A stretch of DNA of 64,000 nt from Azolla caroliniana (GCA_043228905.1 JBHGNT010000013.1:7812001-7876000), one strand, 5' to 3'. Shown: positions 5,743-48,020, counted from the first letter of the stretch. The notes: generated by a model from the letters alone, not told the origin. A program made the numbers and translations.

Positions 5743-8700
5743 TGTTGAGCGGCAAGCTCAACCGGATCCGTATCAGCTGAATAAGCCTGAGCCGGATTGG
5801 CATCCAGAAGGATGAGCTGGTGAGCTGGGGAGCCAGTTGGCCGGATCCATCAGTAATCGGAAGCCTAGTAGCAGCCTAGACTACTAGGTAGTTAAAGTCT
5901 CATAGTTAGTGTTAGACACGTGTGTGAGCATTGAAGTACACCATACTTTTGTCAGTCCGTATGAACTTGTATAAAAGTGTTCACTGAACACATACGATGT
6001 ACAGAGCATTATAGAGAATTGTTATTTTTTAATAGAGTTTTATGTCTTCTCTCTCTTTCTCTATGTCTCTCACGTGTACTATGTATATTCAAGCTCTCCA
6101 TTAATCCTGCGTATTTTTCTGTCTTCGGTTTTCTACTTGCTTCCGCACGCTATTCTTTACATGGTATCCGAGCGAGAGGGTTGAGAACCTCTGCAACTGA
6201 CATAGCTTGAAAGGAAAACCAACTAAGAAGAAAAGAGAAGTAATGGATAGAGGAATGGCTAGCTCGCTCCCGGTGGAGAAGCTCGACAGATCCAACTACG
6301 CATCCTTGCCATACAAGATGCACCAGTACCTGCTTGGCCATGGGTACTGGAGCTATGTCGATGGAGATAATGACACAACACCTGGTGCGGCACACAAGGA
6401 CTTCCCAGTGTGGGAACAAGCGGCAAGTAGAGTGATGTACTGCTTCGTGACCAATGTTGGAGACCAGCTGCTAAGCCATATCCGAGATGCCAAGATGGCA
6501 AAAGAAGCTTGGGGAAACCTAAAGGGCCACAGAGAAAGTGAGTGTTGGAAGAAGCGCGCCGATTCGGACAGATCCGGATCCTGCAAGGCCGGTAGAGAGA
6601 ACCGGGAATACTCGCACTACGCAGAAGGATCAGGAGGATCCAAAACCGGAAAAGCCACTAAAGGGCCAGCCTTGGTGATGAAAAACGAGGCTAACTCGAT
6701 GAAGAAGACCACTTCCAAATCGGAGGAAGTGTGGTACATTGATTCCGGTGCGTCGAATCACATGACGAGCCACAAAGAGTGGTTCTCTTTCTTGGAGAAA
6801 TTAGAAAAACTTAGAGTTGTCGAAACAAGAGACGACACTCCTCACCCAATCGTGCATGTCGGAGAAGTCCTTTTGAGCCACATCGAACAGAGGGGGAAGC
6901 AGATGAACGTGTTACACGTTCCGACTATCACGAAGAACTTGGTGTCAGTCGGTCAGATCGTTGACCAGGGGATGCAGGTGCGGTTCACGCACCTTGGGTG
7001 CTTCATCGAGGAAGAGGGCTAGATTATTGCGCAAGGGCGTAGAGAAGGGAGGATGTTCATCCTCAACACCAATGACGTCGGCATTGCTTTGTTCGCCAAA
7101 GGACATAAGGTCGAATCGGATATCGACCTGTGGCACAAGCGGATCGGCCACGTCAATTACCAGAGGCTTCAAGACCTGCAAACGAAACAAGTTGTTTTCG
7201 GTTTGCCGAAGTTCAGTGGCCGGAAGGCCCAAATATGTGAAGCCTGCCAACTCGGGAAGCAACACCGGCTTCCATTCTCCATCGAACGAAACCGTAGCCG
7301 TAACAAACTCGACCTTATTCATTCGGATGTATGGGGACCGGCACAGAACGTTAGTCTTGGCAGGAGTCAGTATTTCGTCTCCTTCATCGACGACTACAAC
7401 CTTCACACATGGATCTACCTCATTGAGCAGAAGAGCGAAGTCTTCGAGTGTTTTCGGAGCCTAGAAAACCTGGTTGAACGGGAAATGGAGAGGAAGATCA
7501 AGTGCCTACGATTGGATGGCGGAAAAGAATATTTTTCCGGCCAATTCAACAGTTATCTGCAGCAAAAAGGAATTCGGAGAGAGTTCAGCTGCAGATACAC
7601 ACCGGAGCAAAATGGTGTGGCCGAAAGGAGGAATCGGTCGATTGTCAACGCAACAAGGGCAATGCTGGAGGAGAAGAGCATGCCCCATTTCTACTGGGCG
7701 GAGGTGGTCCGGACGACCTTCTACATCCAAAACCGGATCGATGACAAGGTGTCTGTGCATGAGTTGTATTTCGGACGCAAGCCGAATTTGAGACACCTTC
7801 GGATATTCGGTAGCATTGCATATGTGCAAGTGCCGGATGAGAAGCGGAGGAAGTTGGATGCAAAGTCGGAGAAATGCATCCTAGTCGTTTATTCGCATGA
7901 GCAAAGGAAGTATAAGTGTTATAACCCCTGGACGAAGCAGGTCTGAGTTAGCTGGGATGTTGAGTTTGATGAGACGGCATCATGGTATGCCTTACCGGCT
8001 CCGACTTCCTACCCCGACCCGATACCGAAGGATGAGGCTAGTGAGCTTGAACTGGTCCAAATAGAAGATGAAGACCTCGACACTCTAGAAGAGAGTCCAA
8101 TCTCATTTCCATTAAGTGGACCGAATGAGCGGCTATGTCGCGATGACCAGTCGAATGAGGAACCAACGAGTAATGGAGACTCTGTTGTGCTCTCCCCACG
8201 CAAGGAATCGAGGAGACAGTTCACGCGCAAAGAGAAGGGGAAGAAGAAGATGCCGGAATACGAAACCGGCAATGTTGAGTCAGATTAGAGCGAATCCGAC
8301 TCCGGCAAGGATGAAGGTGGATCTTCGGGAACGAAATCCGAACCGGCCAAGAAGGGCCCCAAACCGGGTAACGATAAGTTACGCGGTCTTCCCGCCAGAA
8401 GAACCCCATGAAGCGGTACGGGTACAATGAGTACATGGCACATCATTATGCGTACATGACCAAGGTGGCAGAAGTGTGTGAGCCGGAGAGCTACGCAAAA
8501 ATGGCAAGGGATGCAAATTGGCATGCCGATATGGAGGAAGAAATGCAGACACTTGATGCCAACGACACATGGGACCTCGTTGAGCCTCCCGGACACTATA
8601 AACCGATCGGATGTAAGTGGGTGTACAAGGTAAAGTACAATGCCGACGGTTTAGTTAACCGGTAGAAGGCCCGGTTAGTGGCGAAGGGATACGTGCAGAC

Positions 8701-15929: not shown

Positions 15930-18606
15930 TACCTTATGCATGTAACAATCTTTTCTTCTATTTACAAATTTGTCTCTTCATCCAGTGAGATTCTCACTGA
16001 ACACATACGATGTACAGAGCATTATAGAGAACTGTTATTTTTTAATAGAGTTTTGTGTCTTCTCTCTCTTTCTCTCTATCTCTCCCACGTATTGTGTATA
16101 TTCAAGCTCTCCATTAAACCCGCGTATTTTTCTGTCTTCGGTTTTCTACTTTTTTCCGCACGCTATTCTTCTGTTTCCGGTATGGCTCCAGTAATCCCTA
16201 ACGTGACGGATTCACGATTTCAGATATGTCGGTTGATGTGGATACCAACCGGTCGACATCTGGATATGTCATGACTTGTGTAGGGGGAACTGTTTTGTGG
16301 CAGTTGAGGCTGCAGAAGACGGTTGCATTGTCAACCATGGAGGCGGAGTACATGGCAGTTGTAGAAGCCGGCAAGGAGATAATCTGGATGAAGGACTTCA
16401 TAGTAGAGCTAGGAATCCAACAGGAGGAATACCAGCTCTACTGTGATAGTCAAAGTGCCATCCACCTTGCAAAGAACGCGGTCTACCATTCCCACACGAA
16501 ACATATCCAGTGGAGGTACCACTGGATCCGGGAGAGAGTAGAAGATGAAGAGTTCATGCTGACGAAGATCCACACGGAGGAGAACGGGTCGGACATGCTA
16601 ACCAAGGTCTTGACAACCCACAAGTTGGACGCGTGCCGAATGTGGATCGGGTTGACGAGATATCCCATGCCAGAGTGAATGGGGAAATTGTTGGGAAATC
16701 GGTCTCTCCGGATGGGATCCGGTGATTGTAAAAGAATACGTTGTGTAGAAGCGTATGCGAAACACAGAGTACACAATTCGAAGGAACAAGACAGTTCGGT
16801 AAAACACAGAAGACGTAGAGATGGAGAGGGAGAGGGAGAGACAGAGACAGAGACAGAGAATACACAGAAACTCAATTCAAATAATACTCAATCTGTACAT
16901 ACATTATGCTCAGTGAGCACCTTTTATACAAGCCTGGACAATAGGGCTTACACAAAAACTGACAATACTTGACCGCTCATAAATGAGCCTACTACACAAA
17001 CTCCCAAAATTATTCCCTTATGAGGAATATCTTTCTAACGGCCTCACGGTTTACGCACCGCTACGGCCTGTTGTGCGCACGGTTTTATGCACCCAGTTTA
17101 CGCACTGGGTTACGCACCCAATTACGCACCAAATGTTGAGCTTGTCTCTCAACACTCCCCCTCAAGCTCAACTTGAGGTTCCATTCGTTCTTCCGGATCT
17201 ACGCTCCGGCTCCTTCTGGCTTCACGCCTCGCTCGCACTCCTTGACCCGTTCGATTCCGCGCGCTCCGACCCTTCAAGCTTGTCTACTTGTTCGGCCCTT
17301 CTCAGCTCCCTTGTTGTCGCGGTGTCGGCGCGTCCTTCGCTACCCTTTTCTCCGCATGGCCTTCAGTTGATTCGGCGTATCCAATTCGAACATTCCGATT
17401 GAGTTGAATGATTCTGATTCAATTCAGCTCTCATCCGAATTGGTTGTCTCCAATTCGTCTCCTGTCTTTAGGCCTCTGACTACATCAAACAATGTCTTGG
17501 TCTTGGCCTTTACGCCCTTCTTGGTTGTATCTCCCCCTGATTCGGTTGTCCTCAGCTCTTTCCTACGATTGTGGCCCTTGCTTTCTTCTTCGGCTTCTTC
17601 AGCCGGTCCGAAATCGAATTCTTCATCCGATTCCTCATCACGGTCACTTCCGCCGTGATGAACACCTCCACTCCTTTCACGCTCTTGTTCCTGTTTGTCT
17701 TCCTTTCTCCCCCTCAAGTTTTGGCATGTCGAGGTGACGCAACCCTAGCTCACCCGAGAAATGTCGTAACTTGTCGAGACCAAGAGGCTTGGTGAAGATG
17801 TTAGCAACCTGCCGATCAGTTGGAACATGCAGTAGCTCAAGTGCACCTGAAAGGACCCGCTCGCAGACAAAATGGTAATGCACCTCAATGTGCTTGGTCC
17901 GGGCGTGGAAAATGGGGTTCTTTGCAAGGTGCATACTGTTGAGGTTGTCACAAAATATCGTCGGCGGATCAGACACCTCTACCTGCAGATCCCATAGCAG
18001 CCGTTTCAGCCAAATGACATCGCACATAGCAATAGTCGCCCCTCGATATTCAGCCTCCGTGCTCGACAGTGCTATTGTCGGTTGCTTTTTGCTGTTCCAT
18101 GCGATCACCGCATTTCCTAATGAGAATGCATATCCAAATGTGGATCGGCGATTGTGGGTGTTTCCGACCCAATCGGCATTCGTGTAACTGACTAACTGTT
18201 CAGCTACGCCTACCCGATAAAACAACACCATGTCTTTCGTGTCGCTGACATAACGCAGTATCTGTTGCGCGCATTGAAAGTGTTCGGCCGTGGGTTGCGG
18301 CATGAATTGACTGATTAGGCCGACTAGATAACTAAGATCCGGCCGAGTAATCGTCAAATAGATAAGGCTTCCAACAATCTGTCGGAACTGTGTCGGGTCA
18401 CACGCCTTCCCTAAATCTCGGTGAAGCTTTGCGTTTCAATCCAGAGGGGTCGAGATGGGCTTACAGTTTGCCATCCCAAACTTGAAGAGCATATTAAACG
18501 CGTAATGACGTTGTCGTAGTGTATTTCGTACACTATGTGAAAAACTTATGAAGTACCGATTTAATAAATATGAATAAATAGTAGAAAATATTAAAATATA
18601 TATAAC

Positions 18607-18676
18607 ATGCATAGGGCAAGATTCGAACCTTGCACCTCCATGTTAATAATGTAATGTCTTACCATTACACTAGCAT
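18607..18676 (-). promoter_or_regulatory. tRNA-like Pol III A/B box cassette in LTR U3 (second copy ~23395-23465)
   Basis: Minus strand reads GCTAGTGTAATGGTAAG...GGAGGTGCAAGGTTCGAATCTTGCCCTATGCAT, then TTTT. Confidence 0.6.
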
Positions 18677-19306
18677 TTCATTAGTATTAAAAAGTAGATG
18701 TCCCACATAGAAAGTTAAGTTCATGTAGGATAAACTTTAGTTAAAAGAAAAAAACGCATGCTAAAAGAAAAAGTTGTGCATGCATATCTAGCGTGTATGA
18801 ACGCTATAGTTTATAAAAAACGCACAAGTTAGAAAAAGCATGATCACTTTAGATAAAGCATATAGTCTATCTATAGAAAAAGCATGATCACTTTAGATAA
18901 AGTATATAGTCTATTTATAGAAAAAGCATGGAGTCTATAGTTAAAGAAAACGCATGGGTTGGAAAAGACTCTCTCATCTCTATATAAGGATGAGGGGCAC
19001 AATGTAAAAGGGGTGTGAAATACTTGGAAACTGGATATGTTTCTAAAAAACACCAATTAATAAACTATACTCGTGGGATTCACGAGGATTCTATATCATT
19101 CTCTTTCAACCCAAATTTATATTCTTATATTCATATTGATTAATCTAATACAATACACTCGTGGGATTCACGAGTTTGCTATAACTCTTTCTTACAACAT
19201 ATTTATATTCTTATTAGCCTTAAAACTCTCCTCTTCCTAGTCCAAAACCCTAGCGGTTTCCACCCGACTCACGCAAACGATCTGACGCCGAAAGGCACGA
19301 CACAAG

Positions 19307-19324
19307 TGGTGAACCCGACGTGAA
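19307..19324 (+). promoter_or_regulatory. Primer-binding site complementary to the 3' 18 nt of tRNA-Trp
   Basis: TGGTGAACCCGACGTGAA is the reverse complement of TTCACGTCGGGTTCACCA (plant cytosolic tRNA-Trp 3' end, from memory); lies 4 nt after the LTR; identical at 45234-45251 (-). Confidence 0.85.
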
Positions 19325-20424
19325 GGCCGGTGGCAAGGAGATGGAGAATCAACAAGAGGCGATGAGCATAACAATGATGATGATGTTCGAGCGGATGCTA
19401 CAAGAACCACGAGTGATGTCGGAGATCACGACGGCAGTAAAGCGGCTCGTACAACGAAACAGACAATTCAACGAAAACGATGTGTCACGCTATCTACGTG
19501 ACTACAAGGCGGAGATGATGCGATGTGGGATACCGGAAGGATTGCAAGTGACATCCTTCAATCGGATTGCCACGGATGCGCTACAAGAGAGAATCCACAA
19601 GATACGGCAACAAAACTCGACATGGGGGTCATTCGAAGAAGCTTTACGAGAGGCATATGATTACAAGAGATCGAAGGGACAAGATCGGCGAGAATTCGAC
19701 GAATGGGTGGCATCGAAGAAGACCCACCGAAGTGCAACACAAGCATTCCTAGAGTTCGAGCATCGTTTTGCTCGATTCTCGGAGCGGGAACAAAGATTGG
19801 AGGATAAAGTCCTAATGTTCGTAAGATCGATTGATCGGAAAGAAAGGATGGACATTGGGATCGAGCTCGAAGATGATGACGGTGCAAACGGTCTTACCGA
19901 GGATTGGGCCAAAGTCGAAAGGGTATGCCGGAGACATGATGAGAGGAAGATGAGAATCTTGTCAACGACATGGCCGATGAAGGATGGTCGATTGAAGACA
20001 AACAAAGGATAAGGCCGATAACCCAAGTGTAGAAGAAGATTTCGGAATACAAGTGTCCGAAACATAGGGTGAAAAAGGGGTAAGCATAATTGATGTTTGC
20101 ATAATTGATGTAGTGAAAGAGAGCAAGGAGGACTTGATTGAGGAGGTCGCCACGAAAGATGACATCGAATCGAAGGTGGCTATGGACGAATTAATAGTGG
20201 ATGGTCATATCGAGACTTCCCCACCATTGATTCCAGAGACTCCGGCGGTTGCATTCGAAAGGCAACATGAGACCGAAGAGACGGAAGGTGGCGAAGAGAA
20301 AACAAAGGTCGAAGCCGATGCGTACGATAGAGAGATAGCCGAGAAGATGGCTATGGGTGAAAAATCTTCTATCCCACACCAAATATATCAAAACCCATAT
20401 CTCCTACATCATCAAATTTGAATA

Positions 20425-20475
<51 letters not shown>

Positions 20476-20536
20476 CACACACACACACACACACACACAT
20501 CCCTTATCTTCCCTATATAAACCCCTCCAATTCTAT

Positions 20537-20594
20537 ATGGTCATGTGCACTGATGAGCTCCTTAGGAGCGAAACTAGTTTGCCACATCGACCAT
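20537..20594 (+). ncRNA. Type I hammerhead ribozyme (minimal palindromic stem III), predicted cleavage after GUU at 20579
   Basis: AUGGUCAUGUGCA-CUGAUGA-GCUCC UUA GGAGC-GAAAC UA GUU-UGCCACAUCGACCAU; complete core; 13-bp stem I with two bulged C; 5-bp stem II; stem III inside palindrome AAACTAGTTT. Confidence 0.88.
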
Positions 20595-21229
20595 TTCTTT
20601 GTATTACTTTTGAAGTTTCTTAATATGAATTAGTTTTTAGTCTATTTCTCTCTCTCTAAACTTTGTACATCTCTCTCTCTCTCTCTCTCTCTATAATTCT
20701 CACTCTTAATCTCACATTCACCCATCGATTGTATACCGTTCGCACTCCTTGTATTGACCTCACGGTCTAGAACTCACAATTCGTAGTAATTTCTATGGAG
20801 GACCAATCCACAGAGACGTGAACCCACGATGGCATATGATCGACGCCCTTCGAGTATCCACTTTGTGTCGAGTTCCCTCATTTCAAGTGGAAGGCATTTG
20901 CAACGGCATCATCGGCATCCCATACATGCCTTCAACATATTATCTCTCACTTCCTTACATCTTTTCATTGTAAGCATGGGACTACATTCGGTAGCCATGC
21001 ATTCCCTTTTGTCTCTTTTAGTATGTGTGCATATGGACTACTTTCAATAGTTGGCCTTTTGCATAATCTTAGTATTTCCTTTCCTTTCCAATGCACAGGA
21101 CTACATTGTAGCCGGCATTTGTATTCAACATATGTTCTACCCTTCCGTTGTAACCAATATACCTTGCATCACTCTCCCTCCCACTCACTTTCTCTTGCAT
21201 GATATCCTTCCCCTATAGTCTCTCTCTAT

Positions 21230-22150
21230 ATTAACTTTACCCCTCTTTTATCTTTACCTAATTCTCAACATACCCTTACCTATTTTCAACTCTACCCCTT
21301 CCCTAACTTTTCAATATTTTCAATGTACCCTCCCCCTTACTTTTCCTTATCTTTAACTCTACCCCTTCCCTAACTTTTCAATATTTTCACTATACCCTCC
21401 CCCTTACTTTTCCTTATCTTTAATTCTACCCCTTCCCTAACTTTTCAATATGTTCACTATACACTCCCCCTTACTTTTCCTTATCTTTAACTCTACCCCT
21501 CACATTTTAACTTTTAGCATCCTCCCCTAATTCAGTTTCTCCTAATTCAGTTTCTCCTATTTTCCAATTCTACCCCTCACTTCTTAATTTTTAGCCTCTT
21601 CCCCTCATTCTCCTTTTTCCTATTTTCTAATCCTACCCCTCCCCTCACCTTTTATTGTTTCCAAATTTTATTTTTTTCTAACCATCACGTCCCCCCTATT
21701 TTTTCCTAATTTGATTTTCTACCCCTCCCTTTACTTTTTCATTGCCACTCTAACTTTACCCCTACCTTTCCCTAACTCACGCCAAGTATATGAAATGATT
21801 TGGGTGCGCTTGAATCGTTCTTGGTGATCTTTTCACTTCATTCCCACTTTGTCAATTTACTCTAGCCCTGTCTCATTCACTAATTTCAATCTACCCCTTT
21901 CCCCCTTCTTTTTTTCTAGAATTACATTCATACCCCTCCCTCTTTTAGTAATTTTCTCGTACCCCTCCCCCTTTCATTCTTCTTAATCTCACTCTACCCT
22001 TTCCTCCTCCACTTTAATTTCCAATCTACCCTCCAATTCTTCCTACCCCCCTCCTTTTATCTAAGATCTCCATACAATCTAACATACTTCACCATCCCTA
22101 ACTCCCACCTCACACACTTCTCTCCTACCCTTCCTCTCTCTTTCTCTCTC
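21230..22150. repeat. C/T-rich minisatellite region; core of three 67-bp tandem units at 21288-~21500
   Basis: AACTCTACCCCTTCCCTAACTTTTCAATATTTTCA...CTTATCTTT units start at 21288, 21355, 21422 and 21489 (partial); degenerate TACCC(C)T motifs continue to ~22130. Confidence 0.85.
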
Positions 22151-22247
22151 ACACTCCCCTACATTGTTTTCACATAAGCCCAAAAAATCTTCTATCCCAC
22201 ACCAAATATATCAAAACCCATATCTCCTACATCATCAAATTTGAATA

Positions 22248-22324
<77 letters not shown>

Positions 22325-22360
22325 CCCTTATCTTCCCTATATAAACCCCTCCAATTCTAT

Positions 22361-22418
22361 ATGGTCATGTGCACTGATGAGCTCCTTAGGAGCGAAACTA
22401 GTTTGCCACATCGACCAT
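22361..22418 (+). ncRNA. Second, identical type I hammerhead ribozyme, predicted cleavage after 22403
   Basis: Sequence identical to 20537-20594, 1824 nt downstream. Confidence 0.88.
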
Positions 22419-25400
22419 TTCTTTGTATTACTTTTTAAGTTTCTTAATATGAATTAGTTTTTAGTCTATTTCTCTCTCTAAACTTTGTACATATCTCTCT
22501 CTCTCTCTCTCTCTCTCTCTATAATTCTCACTCCTAATCTCACATTCACCCATCGATTGTATACCGTTCGCACTCCTTGTATTGACCTCATGGTGTAGAA
22601 CTCACAGCACGTAATACAGAGCACGCGCTACGGCGCAAAAAGAAGCATGTGCTACGGCGTGAAAAGAAGCACGCGCTACAATGGAATACGAAGCATGCAC
22701 TACGGCGTAATACGATGCATGCACTACGATGGAATACAAAGCATGCGCTACGGCGTAATACGACGCATGCGCAACAGCGAGAAATAAAGCATACATTAAA
22801 GCCGCACAAGGACCTAACAACGAGCGCATATTCAAAGGTCGACATCGACACGTGGGTAGAACCTACGGAAGACAAGCGCGGAGCAGAGAGAGACAACACA
22901 CCGAGATGCTCAAGAGGACCACAAGGGACCATGACAACCACTCATGGCAATGCAAAGAATGAACAAAGACTATGGTGGATCGGATGTCGACAATGGTTCA
23001 GGTGGAAAGAATGGATGTGCTCAAAATGGAGAGACAAAGCTGACATAGCGAGAGAAACGAAGGGTACAACAAGTAACGAAGAATTACGAGGGCTGCTAAC
23101 CGGAGACTAGACAGAGCCGGCAACCGAACTGAACCGGAAACCGGGCGGAGTCGGCAACCAAAAACCGGAGACCGAACAAGGCCGGCAACCAAAAATGACC
23201 GGCGACGAAACCAACCATGCGGAGAACGAACGGACGAGACTAACAATCACCGACAACTTCGGCACATACCGGAGGATGTGCGGGCTCGGAGGGGGCGAGT
23301 GTCGTAGTGTATTTCGTACACTATGTGAAAAACTTATAAAATACCGATTTAATAAATATGAATAAATAGTAGAAAATATTAAAATATATATAACATGCAT
23401 AGGGCAAGATTCAAACCTTGCACCTCCATGTTAATAATGTAATGTCTTACCATTACACTATCATTTCATTAGTTTTAAAAAATAGATGTCCCACATAGAA
23501 AGTGAAGTTCACGTAGGATAAACTTTAGTTAAAAGAAAAAAACGCATGCTAAAAGAAAAAGATACGCATGCATATCTAGCGTGTATGAACGCTATAGTTT
23601 ATAAAAAATGCACAAGTTAGAAAAAGCATGATCACTTTAGATAAAGCATATAGTCTATCTATAGAAAAAGCATGGAGTCTATAGTTAAAGGAAACGCATG
23701 GGTTGGAAAAGACTCTCTCATCTCTATATAAGGATGAGGAGCACAATGTAAAAGGGGTGTGAAATACTTGGAAACTGGATATGTTTCTAAAAAACACCAA
23801 TTAATAAACTATACTCGTGGGATTCACGAGGATTCTATATCATTCTCTTTCAACCCAAATTTATATTCTTATATTCATATTGATTAATCTAATACAATAC
23901 ACTCGTGGGATTCACGAGTTTGCTATAACTCTTTCTTACAACATGTTTATATTCTTATTAGCCTTAAAACTCTCCTCGTCCTAGTCCAAAACCCTAGCGG
24001 TTTCCACCTGACTCACGCAAACGATCTGACGCCGAAAGGCACGACAACGTTGGCTGATCAATATGCCTTCGGTGGTACGGATCACTTCGATCCCAAGGAA
24101 GTAGTGAATGTCCCCCAGATCCTTCATGTCGAATGATGCCGCAAGCTAGAGCTTCACGTGGTCAATCTCACCTAGGTCGGCGTTGTTGATGACCAAGTCA
24201 TCAACATAAAGTAAAACACTAACCAGTCCGAGTCGACCTTTCCAGATGAATAGTGAGGAGTCTGATTTTGACGTTGCAAAGCCCATCCGACGCAATCGTT
24301 GCGTGATCTTCGCCTTCCAGGCACGCGGGGCTTCCTTTAGTCCGTAAAGGGATTTCATCAATCGGCACACCGCCAAAGTGCTCGTTCCGGAGTGAAATCT
24401 GGGGGGTTGTACCATGTACACCTGTTCCTCAAGCTCATCTTGCAGTAACACATTCTTTACATCCATTTGATGTAAGTGCCACCCCTTTGCCGCAGCTACC
24501 GCGAGCAAAACACGGACGGTCGTCATCTTCGCGACCGGTGCGAACGTCTCATCGTAGTCAATGTCATGTTTCTGCGCTTAACTTTTCGCTACTATCCGGG
24601 CCTTGTATCGGTCGACCGAGCCGTTAGTGTTATAGTTGACCTTGTACACCCACCTACATCCGATCGGCTTCACACCTTTCGGTGCATCAACTAGGTCCGA
24701 GGTTTCATTCTCTACCAATGCGCGCATCTCTTCCTCCATTGCGGCACGCCAATTCGCGTCTTTCGCCACTCCTGCGTAGCTCTCCGGCTCACGCACTTCC
24801 ACTACTCGCATCATGTACGCATAATGGTGCGTCATGTACTCATTATACCCGTATCTCTTTACGGGGTTCTTGAGGCGGGTAGATCAGCGTAATTCGTGAT
24901 TACCCGATTTCGTGACCTTTTCGGCTGATTTCGACCTCTTTTGTAGAGGTTCCTTCTCGACTGGCTCGAGGTTAGATTCACTTCAAACTGACTCGGCATT
25001 ACCGAAATCGTATTCCGGCATTTTCTTCTTGCCCTTCTCCTTATACGTAAGCCGTCTCCTCGGTTCTTTACACGGGGACATCACGGCCGAGTCTCCACTG
25101 CTCGCCGTCTCATCATTTGGTTGGCTAGCTCGGCCCAACCCTTCATTAGGCCCACTTAGTCGGACTGAAATCATCGATGAAGGTTACAAAGTAACGGCTT
25201 CCACCGAGACTCATGTTCCATGTCGGACCCCACACATCCGAATGGATCAAATCGAGCTGATTACAGCTCCGATTGCGCTCATTAGGGAATGGAAGTCGGT
25301 GTTGTTTTCCCATCTGACAGGCTTCACAGACTTGGCCATTCCGGCCACGAAATTTCAGCAACCCGAAAACAATGTTCTTCTTCTGCATTTCACGAAGCTG

Positions 25401-27710: not shown

Positions 27711-30700
27711 TGTCGTGAAGATTCCGGGCCATCGGTAGAAAGAATGTGAAACGCGCGGGAGCACTGGTGTGCATGAGTGCATACCCGTAGTGAATTAGAT
27801 AGTGTAAGTACTAGGCATAGGGAAAAAGGAGGTGTACTAGGTAGTTAAAGCATTAATAGGGATTAAGACATCGCGTAAGTAGGGAGAGTTACGAGGAGAG
27901 CGAATTAGGGAGGGAGAATTTAGGAAGTTAAATCGACAAGGCCATGAATGCTCTGTAACGGTCGATCCTTGTGCTATAAAAGGGGTGACCCTCGACTGTT
28001 TTTGGGGATGTCAATTCTAGAGGGAGGAGAAAGGAAACAGAGAGAAAAAAAGACGAGTCCTACGACGTGCCACCGGAAGGTGCTTCCCCTGCTCGCGTTA
28101 GACGCCCGAGTGCTCCCGACCAAGGGATCGACCTTCTGTGTGCCCACTCATCTCCGTATCTGACTACTGTAGAGCCTACGCTCGAACACCGGCACTAATC
28201 CGGTTGTAATCACCCATAGCGCCACGCGCATATTTTGATAAATAAAAGCTTATCCACCGAACGCAAGTTATTCTTAACATATCTGTCTGCACCTTTGTCT
28301 CCGCACGTTCCTCTTACACTATCTCTTTCTCGTTTCGCTAATCTCTTCTGTTTAAACCACGGTCTCAGAGCTCACGTAAACCACAAACTCTTCCTCCTCA
28401 CTTCTCGATTCCTTGGTTCAAAACCCTCGTGGTCCTGCCCAACTACTACACATCCAAGAGAATTTCCCCCACATATTTGGTGCACCCGACATGAAGAAGG
28501 GCGGCAAAGGAATCTGAAAATGAGAGGGAGTGAACTTGCAGAAGCAATGGCGGTGGCGGTAGACCTCCTGGTTAGCGCTCGCGAGGGTGCGAGTGCCCTC
28601 GACAGGGCCATAGAAGCAACGATTAACAAGATAGGTTGGTTCAGTGGGAAAGACGCCACGAGTTATTTAGAGGCCGACAAATATGAAATGCAGATGAGGA
28701 ATAGACCCGAGGATAGACGGCTGACAGGATTTCCCCGGGTCGTGACACCACACATCCATGCAGAGATGACCGAAATACAAGCGGGTTGTCGTGCTTGGGC
28801 AGAGTTTGCGGAGGACATTCTCAAAAGATACAGCTATGACGACTCGCTCCGGCTATCGAGAACGGACTTTATGGATTGGGTCAACAACCCCAACAAGGGT
28901 CAGAATGCTTCGGCGCTCCTCCAGGAGTTCGCGTCACGATTCGCACAACTCTCTAGATTGGACCGAACCGTGCTCGAAACGAGCAAAGTCCTATTTTTTG
29001 TCACATCGTTCGACTCGCGCGTCCGGGAAAACGTGGATCTTCTTCTTGAAACCAACCGCGGTCTCACGACTAACTGGGCGACCGTCAAAAGAAGTATGCG
29101 GTAGGATTGACAAACGCCGAGATTGGAAAGAAAGGGGGTCCTCGCCAGCCGGACCGGCTATCGAAACCAAAGCCAAGCCGATGCCGAGCCGAATGGAAGA
29201 AACGAGGAAGTGGCTCAAGCTAGGCCCACCCTCGACAAACGTAGTCGCGGGACTTGGAGGCAGCGCAGGACTAGAAGAACTGACAAGGATGGTGCGCGAC
29301 CTCCAGATCGCCCAGGCCCGGCGAAGCGACGAGGGTCAGCCGCGCCACCGATGACCGCCGGCCAATCAGAGGTGCATATGGTGCGACGCCACCGCACATT
29401 CCCCGAGAGATTGCGCTGACCTCGGTGAAGCACTCAGAAGTAATGTAGTCTATTTCTCGAATGGCAGGATATATGCGAGCGACACACGAAGATTGCTTGA
29501 CGCGAATTTCGGACGAGGTGGCATGAAGAGGCTAATGGAAGAAGCCGCGGTACGGCACGTCGAAGCCGTCCACTACTCGACTTCGGCCGGCATCCACGTA
29601 GGCGAAAAGGCGGCCAAACCCGATTCAAACCCTAGGTTCTAGCCGGTTATTCTCGAGACCTTGTCCGGAGGAAGGTTGCAGAATGGAGAAGCAGAGCGCG
29701 TGGAGGAGAGTGTGCACGAAGTTACCGGCTAGAGCGACCCCGTCGAGTAGAGCACCGGCTTTGTGGAGGCCGTGTGCAGGAACTACGAGGCCCTGATCGA
29801 CGAAAGGTGAGCGGAGAAAACCAGGGCAGCAGGCCCTTCGGGAGGTATGAAACCCGAAGCACGCTGAAGGGCACAATGCCATTCCGACCGGGTCCTAGGA
29901 GAAGGAGAAGGGCAGGACTCTGAGCTTCCGTTTAAGCTCGGAAATTGAGAAAACAACGAACCTACAGAAGGTTCTAGAGGAGCGAATTCTCCACAGTCGC
30001 ATAGAACACACATTTAGGGAAGTGCTTGGCATAACCAGAAGGGAATTCCACGACAACATCGTGGACCTCGTTAAGAGAAAGCATCTCGCGACAGAACCAG
30101 AGCCCGAGAAGCCGGTTGAGGTAAGGATGGCACTCCTCGACGAGATGGCCGCAGAAGACGAGCTTGCGGAAAGCCACTACACCAAGCCGCACTGGGCAAG
30201 AGCGACTACAGAAACCCATGTTCGTATCGGGGACGTGAAGGAATTGGTGGTAGCATTAATCGACCACGAGTCGGAAATTAACCTGATGTCCATGGACTTC
30301 TACAGAAAGGGGAATTGGCCGATCAACATGGGTGGAAGATACGCGCGGCTACACGAGCCATGGAAGAACTACACGAGGCTTGCCCGAACGTCAGGGTGAG
30401 CATTGGAGACGTTGATATAAACCAACATTTTTTCGTGCAAGAGACGTCCTCCCACCCGGTCATCCTTGGCGAACCATACATCACGGCGGCAAGAATGGAG
30501 ACGAAAGTGTTGGACAATGGTTCAGCCTATGCGAGGGTAAAAAGTCAAGACGGCCGTCACTCCGTCCAATTTTTGACCGTTCGGAAGAATCACGAGTGGA
30601 ACTGGGACACCCTCGGAAATAACGACAGGGCGGATTTTGTTCCCCGCACCTGTAAAATAAGAAGGAAGGTTTTGTTCTCCGACAACGGGGGATGTACCAT

Positions 30701-33700
30701 AGCCAGCATCAGTGGCCGAGAAAGAAAACGGGCCGAGATACGCTTAAAGGCATGTGGAGCCTTGAGTCACGATGAAGGAATTGGGGAAGCCATGGAGGCG
30801 GTCTCGTTCAATGACACCCTTGGAGAAATCGGGAAGGTAGTCGAAGGAGGCCTAAGAGAAGACCGAGTCATACCGGTCAACTCGGTCGACATGTATGAAA
30901 TCATTGCGGACTTCTAAAGATAAACCAGGGCGCATCGGATCGCCCGAGTAGACATCAAGTACAAGACTGTGGACAGGAAGGTGAAGCCCGTCGTGGCTCC
31001 CTTACCGGAGGGCAGCTGGGAACGAATAAAGGAGGTCGTTACCATCCTAAGCTTGCAAGATTCGGCCAGCATAGGACACCGTTTCACTGACAAAACGCTA
31101 CGAGAACTGAAGATCGGTGGGGGTGGCTTCCTACTGCCGGTAGAAGGGGACCGGTTCAGAAGGATGCTCGAGAGGCACGGGAAAGCCTTCGCATTCTCCC
31201 CTAGAGAGATCGGGTGCGTCAACCCGACCATTGTCAAACCAATGGTGATCTTTACCGTGCCACACGTGCCATGGAGTCTCAAACCAATTCAAGTACCAAG
31301 AGCTCACATGCCAATGATGGAGCTTCTTAAGCAGAAGGTGGAGTTGGGCATCCTCAAACCATCGAGTGCCCCTTACTCTAACCGGTGGTTTACAGTACCA
31401 AAGAAGAACGGTACGTTGCGCTTCATCCAGGGCTTACAACCGGTCAATAAGGTGACCATCTGCAATACGGGAGTTGGACCGTCGATCAATGAGTTCGCAG
31501 AAGCCTTCGCCGAAAGGTCCATATACTCAGTCGGAGACCTTTACTCGGGGTACGACCAGTTCCAGCTGGCCGTGGAAAGCAGGGACATCACTACAATGCA
31601 AACCCCTCTCAGCCTAGTTCGAATGTGTACCCTACCACAGGGAGAGACCAACTCGGTGGCACACATGGTGAATGCAATGAACAAAGTCCTACGGGACTGC
31701 ATTCTGGACATCACCATGCCTTTCCTGGACGACATCCCTATCAAGGGGTGTCCGGAGGACACCAAGGATGAATCGATCGGGGCGGACGGTTGCCGAAGGT
31801 TTGTCACCGACCATATCTCCGACTGCTCGAAGACGCGCGGCTTACCTTCTCGGGAGAAAAGTCAGCCTTCGGACAGCTAGAGATCTTAGTGGTGGGCCGT
31901 CTATGCGGGTCGTACGGCCGGAAGCCATCGCCAACCAAGGTAGAGGCCATCTCAGCAATAAAGGAGGAGTGCGGATCCATCACAGAGGTCCGGCGATTCT
32001 TAGGAGCATGCGCCTTCTACCACAGATGGATCCCTCATTATGCGCACGTCTCTAAACCACTTTACGGCTTGCTCAAGAAGAGTAGGAAATTTGAATGGAG
32101 AAAGGAACATACTGAGGCGGTCCGAAGGCTAAAACGAACGCTCACCGTGGCACCAACTTTACGCAAAGCAGAATACACACCGGGAACTCCGGTCTACATC
32201 ACGGTAGACACCAGCCCAACAGGGATCGGATGGGTCGTGAATCAAGAGGACGAAGACGGCACGCACTTCCCTATCTGGTTCGGTGCGAAGATACTGAGTG
32301 AGCGACAACGAGGGTACGCCCAAGTCAAGCGAGAGCTATGGGGTATCGTTTCAGTAGTTAAGGTCGACAAAGACTACCTAAACAGGTCAGAAGTGATTAT
32401 AGAAACGGACTACCTGCCGATTCTCGGTATGGTCTCCGGATGCGCAACTCCCCACCTGGCCATGCTCAGGTGGATTGCGTACATCAAGTCCCTGAACCCG
32501 GAGATATGACACATCTCGGGTAAGGACAACGCCATGGCCGATATGCTTTCCAGAGCAAGGTTCGAGGATGAGGATGGCATGGTAATGGAGAACGAAGAAG
32601 TCAGTGCGGACTTCTTCGAATCAGCAAGGATGAGGATAAAAGGGCGAGAGGCTCCACCCCTGAACGAGTTCGACAAAGACGACTACAACAGGGAATGGCT
32701 TCTAATCAGAAGGTTTCTAAAAACAATGACGGTGGACGCCTCGATGACTAGGGAGGAAGCGGGACAGCTCTGAAAAAGGGCATACCGATACTTCCTACGG
32801 AACGGGAAGATCTGGAGGGTCCCAAAGAAGCGGAACGACGCGCCGCTCCGGGTAGTAGCGCGGGCAGATGATCAAGAGAAGCTAATATCGGAGTTGCACG
32901 AAAGCACTTGGTCTGGACACCGGGGTACATGGGCCACATTCGAGATGATAAAGGAGAAATACCGGTGGTCGGGTATATATGAGAGCGTGCACGACTTCGT
33001 GTCCATGTGCGAAAGCTTCCAAATGCACTCGGTGGTTCGACACCGCGACGAGCTGCACCCAACATACCCCCCCCCGGCCGTGCACTTCAAATGGATGGTC
33101 GACTTAGTAACCATGCCGATGGGAGAGGGTCAGAAGCGATACCTGGTGCTGGCTAGAGAAGACCTAACGAACCAAGTAAAGGGTCGAGAACTAACTAACA
33201 AGACCACCACCGCAATATGTAAGTTTCTGATCAAAGATTTCATATGCCGATACGGGTGCGTCGGAAAAATCGTGGTTGACCGAGGAGAGTTAGACGCGGA
33301 AGAGGCCGAAGAACTGTTCAATCGGCTAGGCGTAAAATTGTCCCTCACGATGGCGTACAACCCGGAGGCAAATGGAAAGATAGAGCGGGGCCACAGTCCG
33401 ATCGTAAAGGCCATTGTACGCGCGTGCAAAGGGCGAGGCGGTGACTAGCTGAGGTTCCTCCCTTACGCGCTATGAGCGGACTGGACTACCCACAATTCGG
33501 TGACAAGGTACATGCCAATGGAACTAATGTTTGCACAGAAACCCATCATGCCAGTAGAACTAATGATCGCCTCGTGGACGGCGATCGATTGGGCCAACAA
33601 AATGAGCCGAGAAGATTTGCTTGCGGCCTGGATCCGGCAACTCGAGCGAAGGCTAGAAGACATGTAGCGGGCCACGACAAGGGTGAAAAAAGCGAAAATC

Positions 33701-43258: not shown

Positions 43259-45217
43259 TTATTTATATGTAATTAAATCGGTTATATTATTTTTTACTTT
43301 TTCACGTAGTGTACGAAATACACTACAACACTCGCCCCCTCCGAACCCGCACATCCTCCGGTATGTGCCGAAGTTGCCGATGCTCGTTGTCTCCCCTTCA
43401 TCCTCCGTTTGTCCCGCTATGTCAACTTTGTCTCTCCATTTTGAGTAGACCCATTCTTTCCACCCGAACCATTGTCGCCATCCGATCCACCATATTCTTT
43501 GTTCATTCTTTGCATTGCCATGAGTGGTTGTCATGGTCCCTTGTGGTACTCTTGAGCATCTCGGTGTGTTGTCTCTCTCCACTCCGCGCTTGTCTTCCGT
43601 AGGTTCTACCCACGCGTCGATGTCGACCTCCGAATACGCGCTCGCTGTTAGGTCCTTGTGCGGCTTTAATGCATGCTTTATTTCTCGATGTTGCGCATGC
43701 GTCGTATTAGGCCGTAGCGCATGCTTCGTATTCCATCGTAGTGCATGCGTCGTATTACCCCGTAGTGCATGCTTATTTTTGCACCGTAGCGCGTGCTTCT
43801 TTTTGCGCCGTAGCGTGTGCTTCTCTTTACGCCGTAGCACGTGCTTCTTTTGGTGCCGTAGTGCGTGCTCCGTATTACATGCTTCTCCCATCGTAGACCC
43901 GACCTTCGCGTTGTCATGCTTTTGTTTACATCGGAATTTCAGACGGATCATCTTCCATCCGAACCGGCTTCCGACTTTACCTTCCTTGCTGCCACCTCCC
44001 GTCTCTCCGGTCTCACGTTGGTTCTCGGACACAACCGCCGAAGTCTCTAGAATTAGTGGGTAGGAATCCTCGGTATTATCATCTTCTGTCATTTCAACCA
44101 TAGCCTCCTTCTCGGCTATCTCTCCGTCGTATGAATCGGCTTCGACCTTTGTTTTCTCTCCGCCACCTTCCGTCTCTTCGGTCTCACGTTGCCTTTCGAA
44201 CGCAACCGCCGGAGTCTCTGGAATCAGCGGTGGAGAAATCTCGATATGGCAATCCGCCATTGATTCGTCCATAGCCACCTCCGATTCGATTTCGTCTTTT
44301 GTGGCTACCTCCTTAATCACATCCGCTTCACACTCTTTATCTGCATCAATTATGCAAACATCTATTATGCTTACCCCTTTTTGACCCGATGTCTCGGGCA
44401 CTTGTATCCCGAAATTTCCTTCTACACTTGAATTATCGGCCTTATCCTTCGCCATCGTTCTTTCAGAAGACGAGTGGGTGTCTTGTTCCACTCTTTCTCC
44501 CGTGGTACCATCATGTTGTATTTCGGCCTTCATATTGGCTTCATCGTTTTTCCTCAATCGATCATCCTTCATAGGCCATGTCGTTGTTGACGAGATTCTC
44601 AGCTTCCTTTCATCATGTCTTCGGCATACCCTTTCGACTTTGGCCCAATCCTCGGTAAGACCGTTCGCACCGTCATCATCTTCGAGTTCGATCCCGATGT
44701 CCATCCTTTCTTTTCGATCGATCGATTTTACGAACATTAGGACTTTATCTTCTCCCACCAATCGTTGTTCCCGCTCCGAGAGTTGAGCAAAACGATGCTC
44801 GAACTCTAGGAATGCTTGTGTTGCACTTCGGTGGGTCTTCTCCGATGCCACCCATTCGTCAAATTCTCGCCGATCTTTTCCCTTCGATCTCTTGTAATCA
44901 TATGCCTCTCGTAAAGCTTCTTCGAATGACCCCCATGTCGAGTTTTGTTGCCGTATCTTGTGGATTCTCTCTTGTAGCTCATCCGTGGCCACCCGATTGA
45001 AGGATGTCACTTGCAATCCTTCCGGTATCCCACATCGTATCATCTCCGCCTTGTAGTCACGTAGATAGCGTGACACATCATTTCCGTTGAATTGTCCGTT
45101 TCGTTGTACGAGCCGCTTTACTGCCCCCGTGATCTCCGACATCACTCGTTGTTCTTGTAGCATCCGCTCGAACATCATCATCATCGTTATGCTCATTGCC
45201 TCTTGTTGATTCTCCAT
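43259..45217 (-). CDS. gag: Gag-derived protein (652 aa from first ATG) with acidic repeats, 8-aa HALR repeats and a Trp-rich tail; runs into the 3' LTR
   Basis: Uninterrupted ORF; N-terminus aligns with the gag of 10630-15960 (FNGNDVSRYLRDYKAEM...GLTEDW). Confidence 0.8.
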   Translation of the reverse strand: MENQQEAMSITMMMMFERMLQEQRVMSEITGAVKRLVQRNGQFNGNDVSRYLRDYKAEMIRCGIPEGLQVTSFNRVATDELQERIHKIRQQNSTWGSFEEALREAYDYKRSKGKDRREFDEWVASEKTHRSATQAFLEFEHRFAQLSEREQRLVGEDKVLMFVKSIDRKERMDIGIELEDDDGANGLTEDWAKVERVCRRHDERKLRISSTTTWPMKDDRLRKNDEANMKAEIQHDGTTGERVEQDTHSSSERTMAKDKADNSSVEGNFGIQVPETSGQKGVSIIDVCIIDADKECEADVIKEVATKDEIESEVAMDESMADCHIEISPPLIPETPAVAFERQRETEETEGGGEKTKVEADSYDGEIAEKEAMVEMTEDDNTEDSYPLILETSAVVSENQRETGETGGGSKEGKVGSRFGWKMIRLKFRCKQKHDNAKVGSTMGEACNTEHALRHQKKHVLRRKEKHTLRRKKKHALRCKNKHALRGNTTHALRWNTKHALRPNTTHAQHREIKHALKPHKDLTASAYSEVDIDAWVEPTEDKRGVERDNTPRCSRVPQGTMTTTHGNAKNEQRIWWIGWRQWFGWKEWVYSKWRDKVDIAGQTEDEGETTSIGNFGTYRRMCGFGGGECCSVFRTLREKVKNNITDLITYK

Positions 45218-48020
45218 CTCCTTGCCACCCGCCTTCACGTCGGGTTCACCAACTGTGTCGTGCCTTTCGGCTCCGGATCGTTGCGTGAGTCGGGTGGGAA
45301 CCACTGAGGTTTTGGACTAAGAGAAAGAAAAATACAAATAAGGCTAGTAAAGAATAGGTATAAAGAGTTATAAGATAAGAATCTCGTGAATCCCACGAGT
45401 TTAGTATATTTAGTCAATATTTAGGTAGTAAGAGAGAATTATTTTAGCAAATTCGTGAATCCCACGAACATTTTAGATTGATTGATCATTATAGAAAAAT
45501 AATCAACAAAAACTACAATGTGCTCCCCATCCTTATATAGTGATGGGAGAGACTAAGCATAGCTACATGCTTTTTCTCATATGTTCATGCACACTAAATG
45601 TGCATGTGATGCTTTTCTAATCCTTGCTTTTATTTGCTAAATATAGTGCTCATGCACGCTAGATGTGCATGAGTCACTTTTTAGTCGCTTGCGTTTTTCT
45701 ATAAAATATTCACGCACTCTAAAAATACATGATTTACCTTTTAATAAAGGTAGGCGCAAATAAATCACTTATGGTTATTAAATCTATTTATAGAGCACTA
45801 AAGATAAGGTAGCATAATGGTAAAGTTGAGGTTTGGCTACGTGGAGGTACAGGGTTCGAATCTTGCCCTATGCACGTGATAAATATCTTGATATTCTTAT
45901 TTTATTTATTGGTGATAAATATCTTAATATTCTTATTTTATTTATTTATATGTAATTAAATCGGTTATATTATTTTTTACTTTTTCACGTAGTGTACGAA
46001 ATACACTACGACACCGTCACTGACACGGCGGAGGAGCCCATACAATAATTATTAAGCTGGGGGCCACTATTATTAAGTAATCATGTATTTAACCATTAAA
46101 AAAAAAAAAGAGAGAACGTACTATTTCCCCCTCACGGACTCCCCCTCCCCCACACCAAGCGAATCAACACCTACGCCACGATCCGCGAAACGACAGCTAG
46201 CAAAGTTAGCTACCACCGAATGGGAGGAAGAAGCACAACCTTCTCCTACCACCCAGCGGAGGACACAAAAGGAGCCACCAGCCAAATACGCAGAGACGCA
46301 ACCCTCCACAACTATTAGAGATCTAAGTACTAAAGTAAGCTTAAGATAAGGATAAACAAATGATAGATAGAAAGGAGAAAGAGAAACAAGGGTGCCGATC
46401 CACCTGACCACCCTTGAGCGAAGGGATCGAGACGGACTCGAGCCTCGATCGGCGTCCCATACCACCGCCGTGGCGTCGAGTTGTACATGGTGCTGGCACG
46501 CTCGCTACAAGAGTTGACCCACCACAAGAGCAGAGTCTCGATGTAGTCAAAAGATGATCAAATGAGGGTAGCTAGGCCTCTTATTTATAGCGATACCCAA
46601 GGCCCCCAGGCAAGTTCACACTTGACCTAATGGGTTGTCTCAATCCCGAGGATTAAAAGTAATCCTCCCCTTCTTTACACTCTCGTTTAACCCTCACACT
46701 TATCCACGTGTATAGAATACTACGGTAAATTCTCACCACGAGATATTAAATGGTCATGCCTAAACCCTTTAAAACATTGCACTCTTGCAATGGAAAGTTA
46801 GGGAAATTAGTTCTGAGAGTATTTTCGTGTTCCCATGTGGCATCTTTTATTGATTTATCCATCCATTTTATTTTAAATTCTTGGATTTCTTTAGTACGTA
46901 ATTTTTTTGTTTTAACATCGAGAATTCTTTCTGGTACATGTGGTTTAGAAGATAATTCTTCAGAAGTAACCAGAGTTTCAGTTTTAACTGTATTGTCGCT
47001 AGAACCTAGAAGTTCTTTTAGACGACTCACATGAAAGACTGGATGAATTCCGACACCATCGGGAAGAGCAAGACGATTGGCTGATGACCCAATGCGTTTG
47101 AGGACTGTAAAAGGTCCACAAAACCGTGGGGCTAACTTAGCGCACTTACTCGTAGACAATGTCTTAGAATTGTGAGGTACACGTAAAAATACCTTCTGTC
47201 CAGGGTTGAATACACGAGGTTGCCTGTGACGATCGGCATAAAAACGCGCTTTATCTTGAGCTGTTTTTATATTATCTCGTGCAATATGCAACATATCTTG
47301 CATATCCCGAAGAAATTTTTGCGTACTTCGCAACTCATCATGATGTATATTAACATCAATCGGGGCTCGTGGCTGAAAACCATACATCAACATAAAAGGA
47401 CTATATCCCGTCGACGTATGCTTGGAGCTTTTATAAGCAAACTCCAAAATTGGGAGATAACATTCCCATTTTGTTGGTTTTGCACCAACGTATGCTCGAA
47501 GCATGTCCTCAATAATTTGATTTACTCGTTCTGTCTGTCCATCGGATTGAGGATGATCCGTGGAGCTCATGCTCAACGTAGTTTCTAACTTCTTAAAGAC
47601 TTGCGTCCAGAAGTCACTAGTAAACTTTGGATCTCGATCACTCACGATATCCATCGGTAACCCATAAAAACGAAACAATTCGTCAACGAATTGGTAAGCC
47701 AATTCAGGAGCTGTTACCGTGGTTTTAGTCATGGATATACTTTCCCACTTATTATTGGGAATGTCCAAGGGATGTAAAAGTCATGCGGCTTTAAGTCGCT
47801 CAGCTTTGTTAACCTGACAGTGGTGACATTTAGTCACATAGCTATGTATGTCATGACGCATCTTAGGCCAATAAAATTGAGTGGAGATGAGAACAAGTGT
47901 ACGATGTATTCCAGGGTGCCCTGCTGAGGGTGCATCATGGCATTCAAAAAGAATCCTCTTTTTGACCTCGGGTAAATCTGGAACACAAACCTTCCCATTA
48001 CGGTAGAGCAAACCGTTAGC

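Follow-up and report, generated by a model that had tools for sequence, protein, structure and literature searches.

Canonical type I hammerhead ribozymes were described in 2014 in the pseudo-long terminal repeats (pseudo-LTRs) of endonuclease-less Penelope-like elements (PLEs) of Selaginella (Cervera and de la Peña, PMC4209133), and the 2016 retrozyme paper (PMC4918200, Additional file 1) records 111 type I hammerheads from Selaginella along with four twin repeats 757-994 nt in length. A descent of retrozymes from PLEs was proposed by de la Peña and Cervera in a 2017 essay (PMC5680766), endonuclease-less PLE-X with canonical hammerheads have been found in spikemosses, with hints in mosses (Craig et al. 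2021, PMC8557442), and a 2026 preprint traces the non-LTR retrozymes of animals back to PLE pseudo-LTRs (bioRxiv 10.64898/2026.07.22.740005). Our literature search found no paper on PLEs or type I hammerhead elements in true ferns. Here we analyzed a 64,000-nt stretch of Azolla caroliniana DNA (GCA_043228905.1 JBHGNT010000013.1:7812001-7876000; the whole stretch is referred to as the window), in which positions 20362-22606 hold an insert with two identical type I hammerhead motifs. Our analysis indicates that this insert is very probably a non-autonomous derivative, devoid of both open reading frames (ORFs), of endonuclease-less two-ORF PLEs, with the life cycle proposed below. A preliminary description of the locus, made from its sequence alone, had set type I hammerheads, as a feature of PLEs and metazoan retrozymes, against the type III hammerheads of described plant elements; given the 2014 report and the twin repeats of 2016, this contrast was overstated.

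Each of the closest described systems shares part of the organization found here. The endonuclease-less PLEs of S. moellendorffii (Gladyshev and Arkhipova 2007; PMC4209133) also have a plant host, type I hammerheads with a short palindromic helix III, pseudo-LTRs and a reverse transcriptase lacking the GIY-YIG endonuclease, and the S. moellendorffii protein LOC112343723 is 39% identical over 583 aa (E 9e-123) to ORF2 of the protein-coding relatives described below. Unlike these PLEs, the Azolla element is devoid of ORFs and lies within an LTR retrotransposon, in a 64-kb window without telomere repeats and in another host. The twin type I repeats of Selaginella (PMC4918200, PMC5680766), which are putative retrozymes, resemble it in their plant host, in having no reported coding capacity and in carrying a pair of type I hammerheads at a spacing of a few hundred to a thousand nt; those four loci of 757-994 nt have only been listed, whereas for the present element the ends, promoter module, PLE homology and covariation are documented. 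Metazoan non-LTR retrozymes (PMC7229834; bioRxiv 10.64898/2026.07.22.740005) are likewise non-coding, carry type I hammerheads, occur in tandem or partial tandem, coexist with autonomous PLEs and appear derived from PLE pseudo-LTRs. Their units, however, measure 170-400 nt and give highly paired circular RNAs, whereas the unit here is 1,824 nt long with a poorly paired predicted fold (26%), retains relics of a 5' untranslated region (UTR), ORF1 and a 3' UTR, resides in a plant and has a circle that is only hypothetical. Finally, plant LTR retrozymes (PMC4918200) are similarly non-autonomous, with a hammerhead and promoter in each terminal repeat, but they possess type III ribozymes, true LTRs, a tRNA-Met primer-binding site (PBS), a polypurine tract (PPT) and a 4-bp target-site duplication (TSD), and their circles of 600-1000 nt are GC-rich and highly paired; no such feature is found here.

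Window self-BLAST, alignment and reading of the sequence show that the insert contains two direct repeats, 20362-20778 and 22185-22606, that are spaced 1,824 bp apart and are 96% identical, with differences that are almost all in microsatellite length. The insert is thus a "1.2-mer", in which a full unit (20779-22606) is preceded by the last 417 nt of another unit (1.23 units in total). Its features, all on the + strand, are as follows.

20362..20778, +: upstream pseudo-LTR, 417 bp, a 5'-truncated partial copy equal to the last 417 nt of the unit
20427..20499, +, with a second copy at 22250-22323: (CT)n(CA)n microsatellite upstream of the promoter (Tandem Repeats Finder)
20514..20521, +, with a second copy at 22338-22345: TATA box TATATAAA, starting 36 nt before CUGAUGA
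20537..20594, +: hammerhead 1, type I, predicted cleavage 20579|20580
20770..20778, +: unit 3' terminus GAACTCACA, directly adjoined by the unit start (tandem junction)
20779..22184, +: non-coding body, comprising the remainder of the 5' UTR, an ORF1-start relic, 67-bp repeats and a C/T-rich part
ATG at 20795, similarity to ~20935, +: ORF1-start relic within the non-coding body
~21868-22184, +: C/T-rich part within the non-coding body, resembling PLE 3' UTRs
22185..22606, +: downstream pseudo-LTR, 422 bp, closing the full unit 20779-22606 (1,828 bp)
22361..22418, +: hammerhead 2, type I, identical to hammerhead 1, predicted cleavage 22403|22404

The longest ATG-initiated ORF in the insert encodes 73 aa and no PLE reverse transcriptase is encoded, so the insert is at most a non-autonomous derivative. 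It contains no PBS-like (tRNA-iMet) site within 3 mismatches and no polypurine tract (no purine run of 9 or more), its repeats do not start with TG, and no TSD flanks it. Tandem Repeats Finder also identified a 67-bp unit repeated 3.3 times (94% matches) at 21281-21500 of the non-coding body; the number of these repeats differs in two related metagenomic copies (L029 and L030).

Both direct repeats contain the same 58-nt motif, in which every core position of a type I hammerhead can be read (C3 U4 G5 A6 N7 G8 A9, G12 A13 A14, A15.1-U16.1, H17 that is not G, and G10.1-C11.1). Stem I is formed by a 13-nt 5' arm, ATGGTCATGTGCA, that pairs with a 15-nt 3' arm, TGCCACATCGACCAT, around two bulged C residues. 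The 5' arm is followed in order by CTGATGA, GCTCC-TTA-GGAGC (a 5-bp stem II with loop UUA), GAA, AC-TA-GT, T17 and the 3' arm. Helix III consists of 2 bp (AC/GU) and a 2-nt loop (UA) and falls within a perfect palindrome, AAACTAGTTT (ACUAGU in RNA). The 30-nt string comprising core and stem II occurs exactly twice in the window, at 20550-20579 and 22374-22403, where 0.00 occurrences are expected by chance. In these respects our reading agrees with the preliminary description, which had reported two ~420-bp repeats with an identical, complete hammerhead, a 2-bp stem III within a palindrome, predicted cleavage at 20579 and 22403, and no long ORF, PBS, PPT, TSD or TG..CA ends. Rfam returned nothing in the window at its gathering score, and the hammerhead assignment is matched in that database only at a relaxed threshold, at which both copies align end to end with Hammerhead_HH9 (RF02275), the best Rfam match, at 17.9 bits (gathering score 52; E 0.53). 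The core and stem II are near-identical to the HH9 consensus, and the low score arises because stem III is 2 bp with a 2-nt loop, giving no stem III hairpin, and because stem I differs.

Scanning metagenome contigs of a single set of ENA assemblies with a hammerhead pattern yielded 33 loci that fall into five families (a-e). Since the stem I arms lay outside the search pattern, they provide an unbiased test of the fold. The outer stem I helix comes in two versions, GGUC/GACC (families a and d) and GACC/GGUC (families b, c and e); two stem I base pairs have therefore changed on both sides, and neighboring pairs differ too. The mean pairing energy of 5' and 3' arms was -9.8 kcal/mol for arms of the same hammerhead, -8.9 kcal/mol for arms exchanged within the same helix type and -1.8 kcal/mol for arms of different types. 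A covariance model built from 17 hammerhead variants gave 38 matches in the window and loci, two of them new (a second one in L006 and a weak one in L022), and detected no hammerhead in the window beyond the two already known. In the model alignment 88.7% of cells were paired, compared to 30-50% when partners were slid, changes on both sides were found at seven pairs (six of the eight outer stem I pairs and one stem II pair), and the observed covariation score was reached by none of 500 shuffles. Among the nine copies of family a, not one of the 58 hammerhead columns varies, compared to 12 of 65 and 22 of 79 columns in the downstream flanks, and none of the 37 strong matches departs from the palindrome ACUAGU or from U17. 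These comparisons argue that the hammerhead motif is real and structurally constrained and that its fold is under selection.

With a helix III of 2 bp, a single motif cannot fold actively, and activity would arise only by the pairing of two palindromes. Activity of such palindrome-paired dimers is reported for PLE hammerheads (Lünse et al. 2016, as cited in PMC6765202 and discussed in PMC4209133). Cofolding of the two hammerheads returned a trivial full duplex, a result that does not bear on a helix III dimer. In one metagenomic locus two hammerheads lie 257 nt apart (L006:5491-5557 and 5748-5814) downstream of ORF2 of an autonomous PLE; they form a short tandem unit of a size like that of metazoan retrozymes, and the second was found by the covariance model only, having been missed by the exact pattern.

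The element occurs only once in the window by self-BLAST; further copies were found in public runs from three related organisms (A, B and C) and in the metagenome contigs. In organism A, contigs of the internal part have a summed depth of 871-966, compared to ~31-48 for diverged, apparently low-copy host-family contigs; in organism B the corresponding values are 703-754 and ~9-14, and the internal part is also present in organism C. Seven of the 33 metagenomic loci (L005, L019, L025, L027, L029, L030 and L032) hold the same non-coding element at 86-95% identity. The preliminary description had proposed to judge the reading also by genome-wide copy number, and these depths and related contigs show a mobile family with many copies in at least three related organisms. 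All seven related contigs pass without a seam across the unit junction 1828->1, and two of them (L005 and L029) hold more than one unit. The window and the independent insertion L027, whose flanks are unrelated, share an identical 3' end: in both, the 9-mer GAACTCACA is the true 3' end, located at 22598-22606 in the window. The 5' ends, by contrast, differ, lying at unit positions ~1407 (window), ~1677 (L027) and ~1783 (L005). A fixed 3' end combined with variable 5' truncation on a template of more than one unit is the signature of PLE pseudo-LTRs and is unlike LTR elements, so that the 1.2-mer layout pointed out earlier is borne out as the product of a longer-than-unit copy and not of true LTRs. 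The 3' end lies 199 nt past the predicted ribozyme cleavage site, at a point homologous to the telomere-joined end of a sister family (see below), and the ribozyme thus does not define the ends of the DNA copies.

Two further observations concern related copies. The second hammerhead of the family-a copy at L030:1776-1860 has a shortened 3' arm, TGCCATAGACCAT. After it come ACCCTAACACCCCCAAACCCC, which resembles a degenerate telomeric C-strand, and then unrelated sequence; the site could represent either a join to another PLE or an alternative 3' end. In run X20, whose RNA label is guessed, a 755-nt contig joins the hammerhead (22332-22404, 2 mismatches) to the body (20708-21350, 93%) with ~15 other letters in between, a variant without ~127 nt after the ribozyme. 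Other contigs of this run retain the core with differing arms, and the run holds diverged family members; if X20 really is RNA, several hammerhead families are transcribed. None of the runs recorded as holding the element is an RNA run.

The origin of the non-coding sequence is indicated by its similarity to autonomous loci. Window positions 20421-20926 match the pseudo-LTR and ORF1 start of several autonomous loci at ~64% identity (blastn; all such matches are at ~60-64%), translated searches (blastx) identify a relic of the ORF1 N-terminus at ~20732-20935 with 38-47% identity (E 1e-4 to 1e-5), and positions 21868-22337 resemble the 3' UTRs of L034 and L016. The 3' terminus of the element lies 16 nt before the relic ATG, in the same relative place as the telomere-joined end of family b, and in both cases the block CGCACTCCTTG lies just before that end. 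The pseudo-LTR module that the element has in common with these loci consists of (CT)n, TATA box, type I hammerhead and ~200 nt of 5' UTR. The classification as a non-autonomous element of PLE type, already put forward in the preliminary description, is upheld by this homology to a PLE pseudo-LTR, ORF1 start and 3' UTR together with the lack of any ORF above 73 aa. The window contains no telomere array. CCCTAA occurs six times on the sense strand of the element and not at all on the other strand; because ~1.5 are expected from base composition and three of the six fall in one tandem repeat, we do not count this excess as evidence.

The remaining 26 of the 33 loci belong to four further hammerhead families (b-e), which have the CUGAUGA…GAAACUAGUU frame in common and differ in arms and loops. 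The autonomous layout, on one strand, consists of an ORF1 of ~750-900 aa and, in another frame and with a 13-nt overlap, an ORF2 of ~660 aa; ORF2 is followed by ~250-400 nt, a TATA box, the hammerhead, ~200 nt and the next ORF1, and some loci are in tandem. ORF2 has only a sub-threshold Pfam match, to RVT_1, but in alignments displays the PLE hallmarks of an N-terminal LS..E..LL.LGL block, PADKNxG, FDVxSLYPSIP, GTAMGS and RYIDD. Its nearest named relatives are uncharacterized proteins of Cryptomeria, S. moellendorffii and Ginkgo (39-40% identity), and more distant relatives include animal proteins in which such a reverse transcriptase is fused with a GIY-YIG endonuclease. One protein of the latter architecture (P0187), which passes the Pfam thresholds for both RVT_1 and GIY-YIG, is 31% identical to ORF2 over 573 residues (E 3e-61), and ORF2 stops where the endonuclease would begin. 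No GIY-YIG domain was found in any ORF1 or ORF2 of the relatives, Pfam gave no match for ORF1 even at E 5, and searches of PDB sequences with ORF2, single or as a profile, returned nothing. A PLE reverse transcriptase without GIY-YIG marks the relatives as telomere-type, endonuclease-less PLEs. The autonomous partner anticipated earlier, a PLE reverse transcriptase joined to GIY-YIG, therefore exists as to its reverse transcriptase and not as to its endonuclease.

Family b provides the link to telomeres. In this family (L002, L008, L020 and L026) CCCTAAA units are scattered after the hammerhead, and in L002 (minus strand, 2-64 and 167-247) the 3' end of the family runs into at least nine perfect CCCTAAA repeats at the contig end, which is direct evidence of telomere attachment in this family; in L008 and L020 the same point lies 12 nt before the ORF1 ATG. 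Family b thereby resembles the telomere-attaching Athena and Coprina PLEs and the Terminons (Gladyshev and Arkhipova 2007; Arkhipova 2017), in which, as summarized in PMC8557442, a hammerhead is followed by reverse-complement telomere units and the 3' end is joined to the telomere repeat, here (CCCTAAA)n, and in which ORF1 and ORF2 are separated by a frame shift as in the relatives described here. The window's own family differs from Athena and Coprina, as summarized there, in that it ends in GAACTCACA, bears no telomere-complementary stretch and is inserted internally.

In nearly every locus listed, the protein-coding ones included, a TATA-like box (usually CTATATAAAC) precedes the hammerhead at a comparable distance. 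Given this fixed distance, the TATA box of the pseudo-LTR is presumed to be an RNA polymerase II promoter, and transcription is predicted to start ~25-35 nt after 20514, within the stem I 5' arm or immediately ahead of it. Outside family b, most families have a (CT)n tract ahead of the TATA box. Such tracts, sometimes with (CA)n, flank the TATA-hammerhead module on both sides in the window (20427-20499, 20666-20692, 22250-22323 and 22494-22520) and at most loci of these families; conceivably they mark a favored target, arise by slippage of the reverse transcriptase or belong to the promoter. Microsatellite insertion bias has been reported in other PLE clades (Craig et al. 2021, PMC8557442).

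The element into which the insert has gone, and the remainder of the window, contain the following features.

18512..19302, +: host 5' LTR, 97-98% identical to 23300-24046
19320..20361, +, resuming at 22607-23110: host gag-like frame, 87-93% identical to the paralogue
23300..24046, +: host 3' LTR, 97-98% identical to 18512-19302
43259..45304, -: intact paralogue of the host ORF (681 aa), the empty-site reference
6207-7946, 28235-33448, 46746-50354 (minus strand) and 53838-55346: Copia and chromodomain-Gypsy fragments

In the public runs of the three related organisms, host-family contigs without the insert diverge precisely at 20362 and 22606 and continue as paralogue sequence, which fixes the insert boundaries to the base; the host is split at exactly GGT GAA | GCA, as had been described. 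What was added by our comparison is a loss of host sequence: relative to the paralogue and to uninterrupted contigs, the interrupted host copy lacks 210 bp at the insertion point, a gap flanked by an imperfect 9-bp direct repeat (ATGGTTGAA / ATGGGAGAA). Dozens of host-family contigs have the 210 bp and, among the joints listed, none lacks the 210 bp while also lacking the insert, from which it follows that the loss may have come with the insertion. Assignment of the host ORF to gag is weak, since the Atlas gave only weak "retrotransposon gag" neighbors, at 0.88, and Pfam gave no match even at E 5. The host ORF carries a 24-bp tandem repeat that encodes a basic repeat (22610-22779 in the window, 43700-43860 in the paralogue); the interrupted copy has ~7 units and the paralogue a larger number. 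With a summed contig depth that reaches ~135,000 in organism A, compared to ~40 for low-copy-looking contigs, the host family is very abundant. The rest of the window consists of the Copia and chromodomain-Gypsy fragments (integrase, reverse transcriptase and RNase H), the Gypsy reverse transcriptase having closest named relatives at 52-55% identity, and no host gene was recognized there.

We propose that a PLE-derived, gene-less element with this organization would spread as follows. RNA polymerase II would start at the pseudo-LTR TATA box, placing the promoter-proximal ribozyme, perhaps incomplete, at the extreme 5' end of the RNA and a complete one downstream. A PLE reverse transcriptase supplied in trans would begin cDNA synthesis at a fixed internal site, …GAACUCACA (…CUCACA in RNA), on an RNA of more than one unit, which could be a read-through or tandem transcript or a circle. 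Synthesis would halt at variable points, leaving a partial unit in front of a complete one (1.23 units in the present insert), and the cDNA would be joined to a free DNA end or break without an endonuclease, a mode of joining that fits both the absent TSD and the 210 bp of lost host sequence. The hammerheads most likely would process the RNA, removing a capped leader and/or cutting multimers to 1,824-nt monomers. Since DNA copies extend 199 nt past the predicted cut, the RNA that is reverse transcribed would include downstream sequence and so be either uncut or a joined circle; the DNA ends are set by reverse transcription and not by ribozyme cutting. In the PLE tested in vitro (from Anolis), the internal sites at which reverse transcription begins coincide with the genomic ends, and insertion was unaffected in hammerhead mutants (PMC11167929).

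The alternative that comes closest to this proposal differs from it in the template only: as in a retrozyme, both hammerheads would cut, a host RNA ligase would join the 1,824-nt monomer, and rolling-circle reverse transcription would give the 1.2-mer and the tandems. Two complete hammerheads with a shared palindromic stem III, the seamless junction in seven of seven related contigs, two of them with more than one unit, and the proposal of the same model for metazoan type I retrozymes (PMC7229834) all speak for such a circle. Yet with 7% G, 26% of bases paired and -0.09 kcal/mol per nt, the predicted monomer is unlike the highly paired circles of retrozymes; the one PLE tested in vitro used uncleaved RNA, with no reads ending at the hammerhead site (PMC11167929); and read-through of an existing tandem gives the same layout. 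A circular template is accordingly possible but unlikely in our estimation. A wider version of this idea casts the family, an ORF-less derivative of telomere-type PLEs with a TATA promoter of its own, as the equivalent in plants of metazoan non-LTR retrozymes and as the intermediate postulated between PLEs and retrozymes; its cut 1.8-kb RNA would circularize and be copied by a rolling circle, and the family would have left telomeres for internal breaks, needing no endonuclease. This version strikes us as unlikely. Two ~420-bp direct repeats around a non-coding center, in a window where Gypsy elements abound, might also recall an LTR-type retrozyme or an element like a terminal-repeat retrotransposon in miniature (TRIM), with true LTRs and mobilized by Ty3/gypsy machinery. 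We rejected this as highly improbable: the insert has no PBS within 3 mismatches of the tRNA-iMet site, no PPT, no TG at the repeat start and no TSD, its 5' repeat is truncated at different points in different insertions, its hammerhead is type I and not type III, and its sequence is homologous to a PLE pseudo-LTR, ORF1 start and 3' UTR. A local duplication at a single locus, immobile and bearing a hammerhead-like string by chance, would account for the single occurrence in the window and for the absence of an Rfam match at the gathering score; it is refuted, and its probability is next to nil, by a multi-copy element whose internal part is at high depth in organisms A and B and present in C, by seven further copies in other contexts and by a motif that covaries across families.

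Several points nonetheless weigh against the derivation from endonuclease-less PLEs and the life cycle that we favor. The PLE assignment of ORF2 comes from motifs and pairwise similarity. Because the scan pattern fixed the core and four bp of stem II, unbiased evidence is confined to stem I and to the fifth pair of stem II, and the alignment scored for covariation was fitted to the model and leans towards it. The ends seen amount to only two true 3' ends and three 5' ends, and that the metagenome contigs come from the same or a closely related plant is an assumption. The 3' end of the window's family has no telomere-complementary stretch. The 210-bp gap is bounded by a 9-bp repeat of host with host and could instead be an unrelated slippage deletion. 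Finally, the start, the cleavage and the circle are predictions from sequence, the one run with a guessed RNA label consisting of contigs and not reads, and contigs do not reveal starts, ends or circles.

Taken as a derivative of endonuclease-less PLEs, the element extends a known kind of system to a new host lineage, in a well-preserved and gene-less form, and does not constitute a new class. Before, plant evidence for a descent of retrozymes from PLEs was a list of Selaginella motifs. The present family would represent a concrete step of such a descent in a non-seed plant other than Selaginella, namely a PLE that has lost its genes, has kept the module of promoter, hammerhead and 5' UTR and is still spreading. 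Together with its sister families it forms a natural data set on the role of the hammerhead, in which DNA copies end 199 nt from the predicted cut site, and the same data set bears on endonuclease-less insertion away from telomeres, where no TSD is formed and host sequence is missing.

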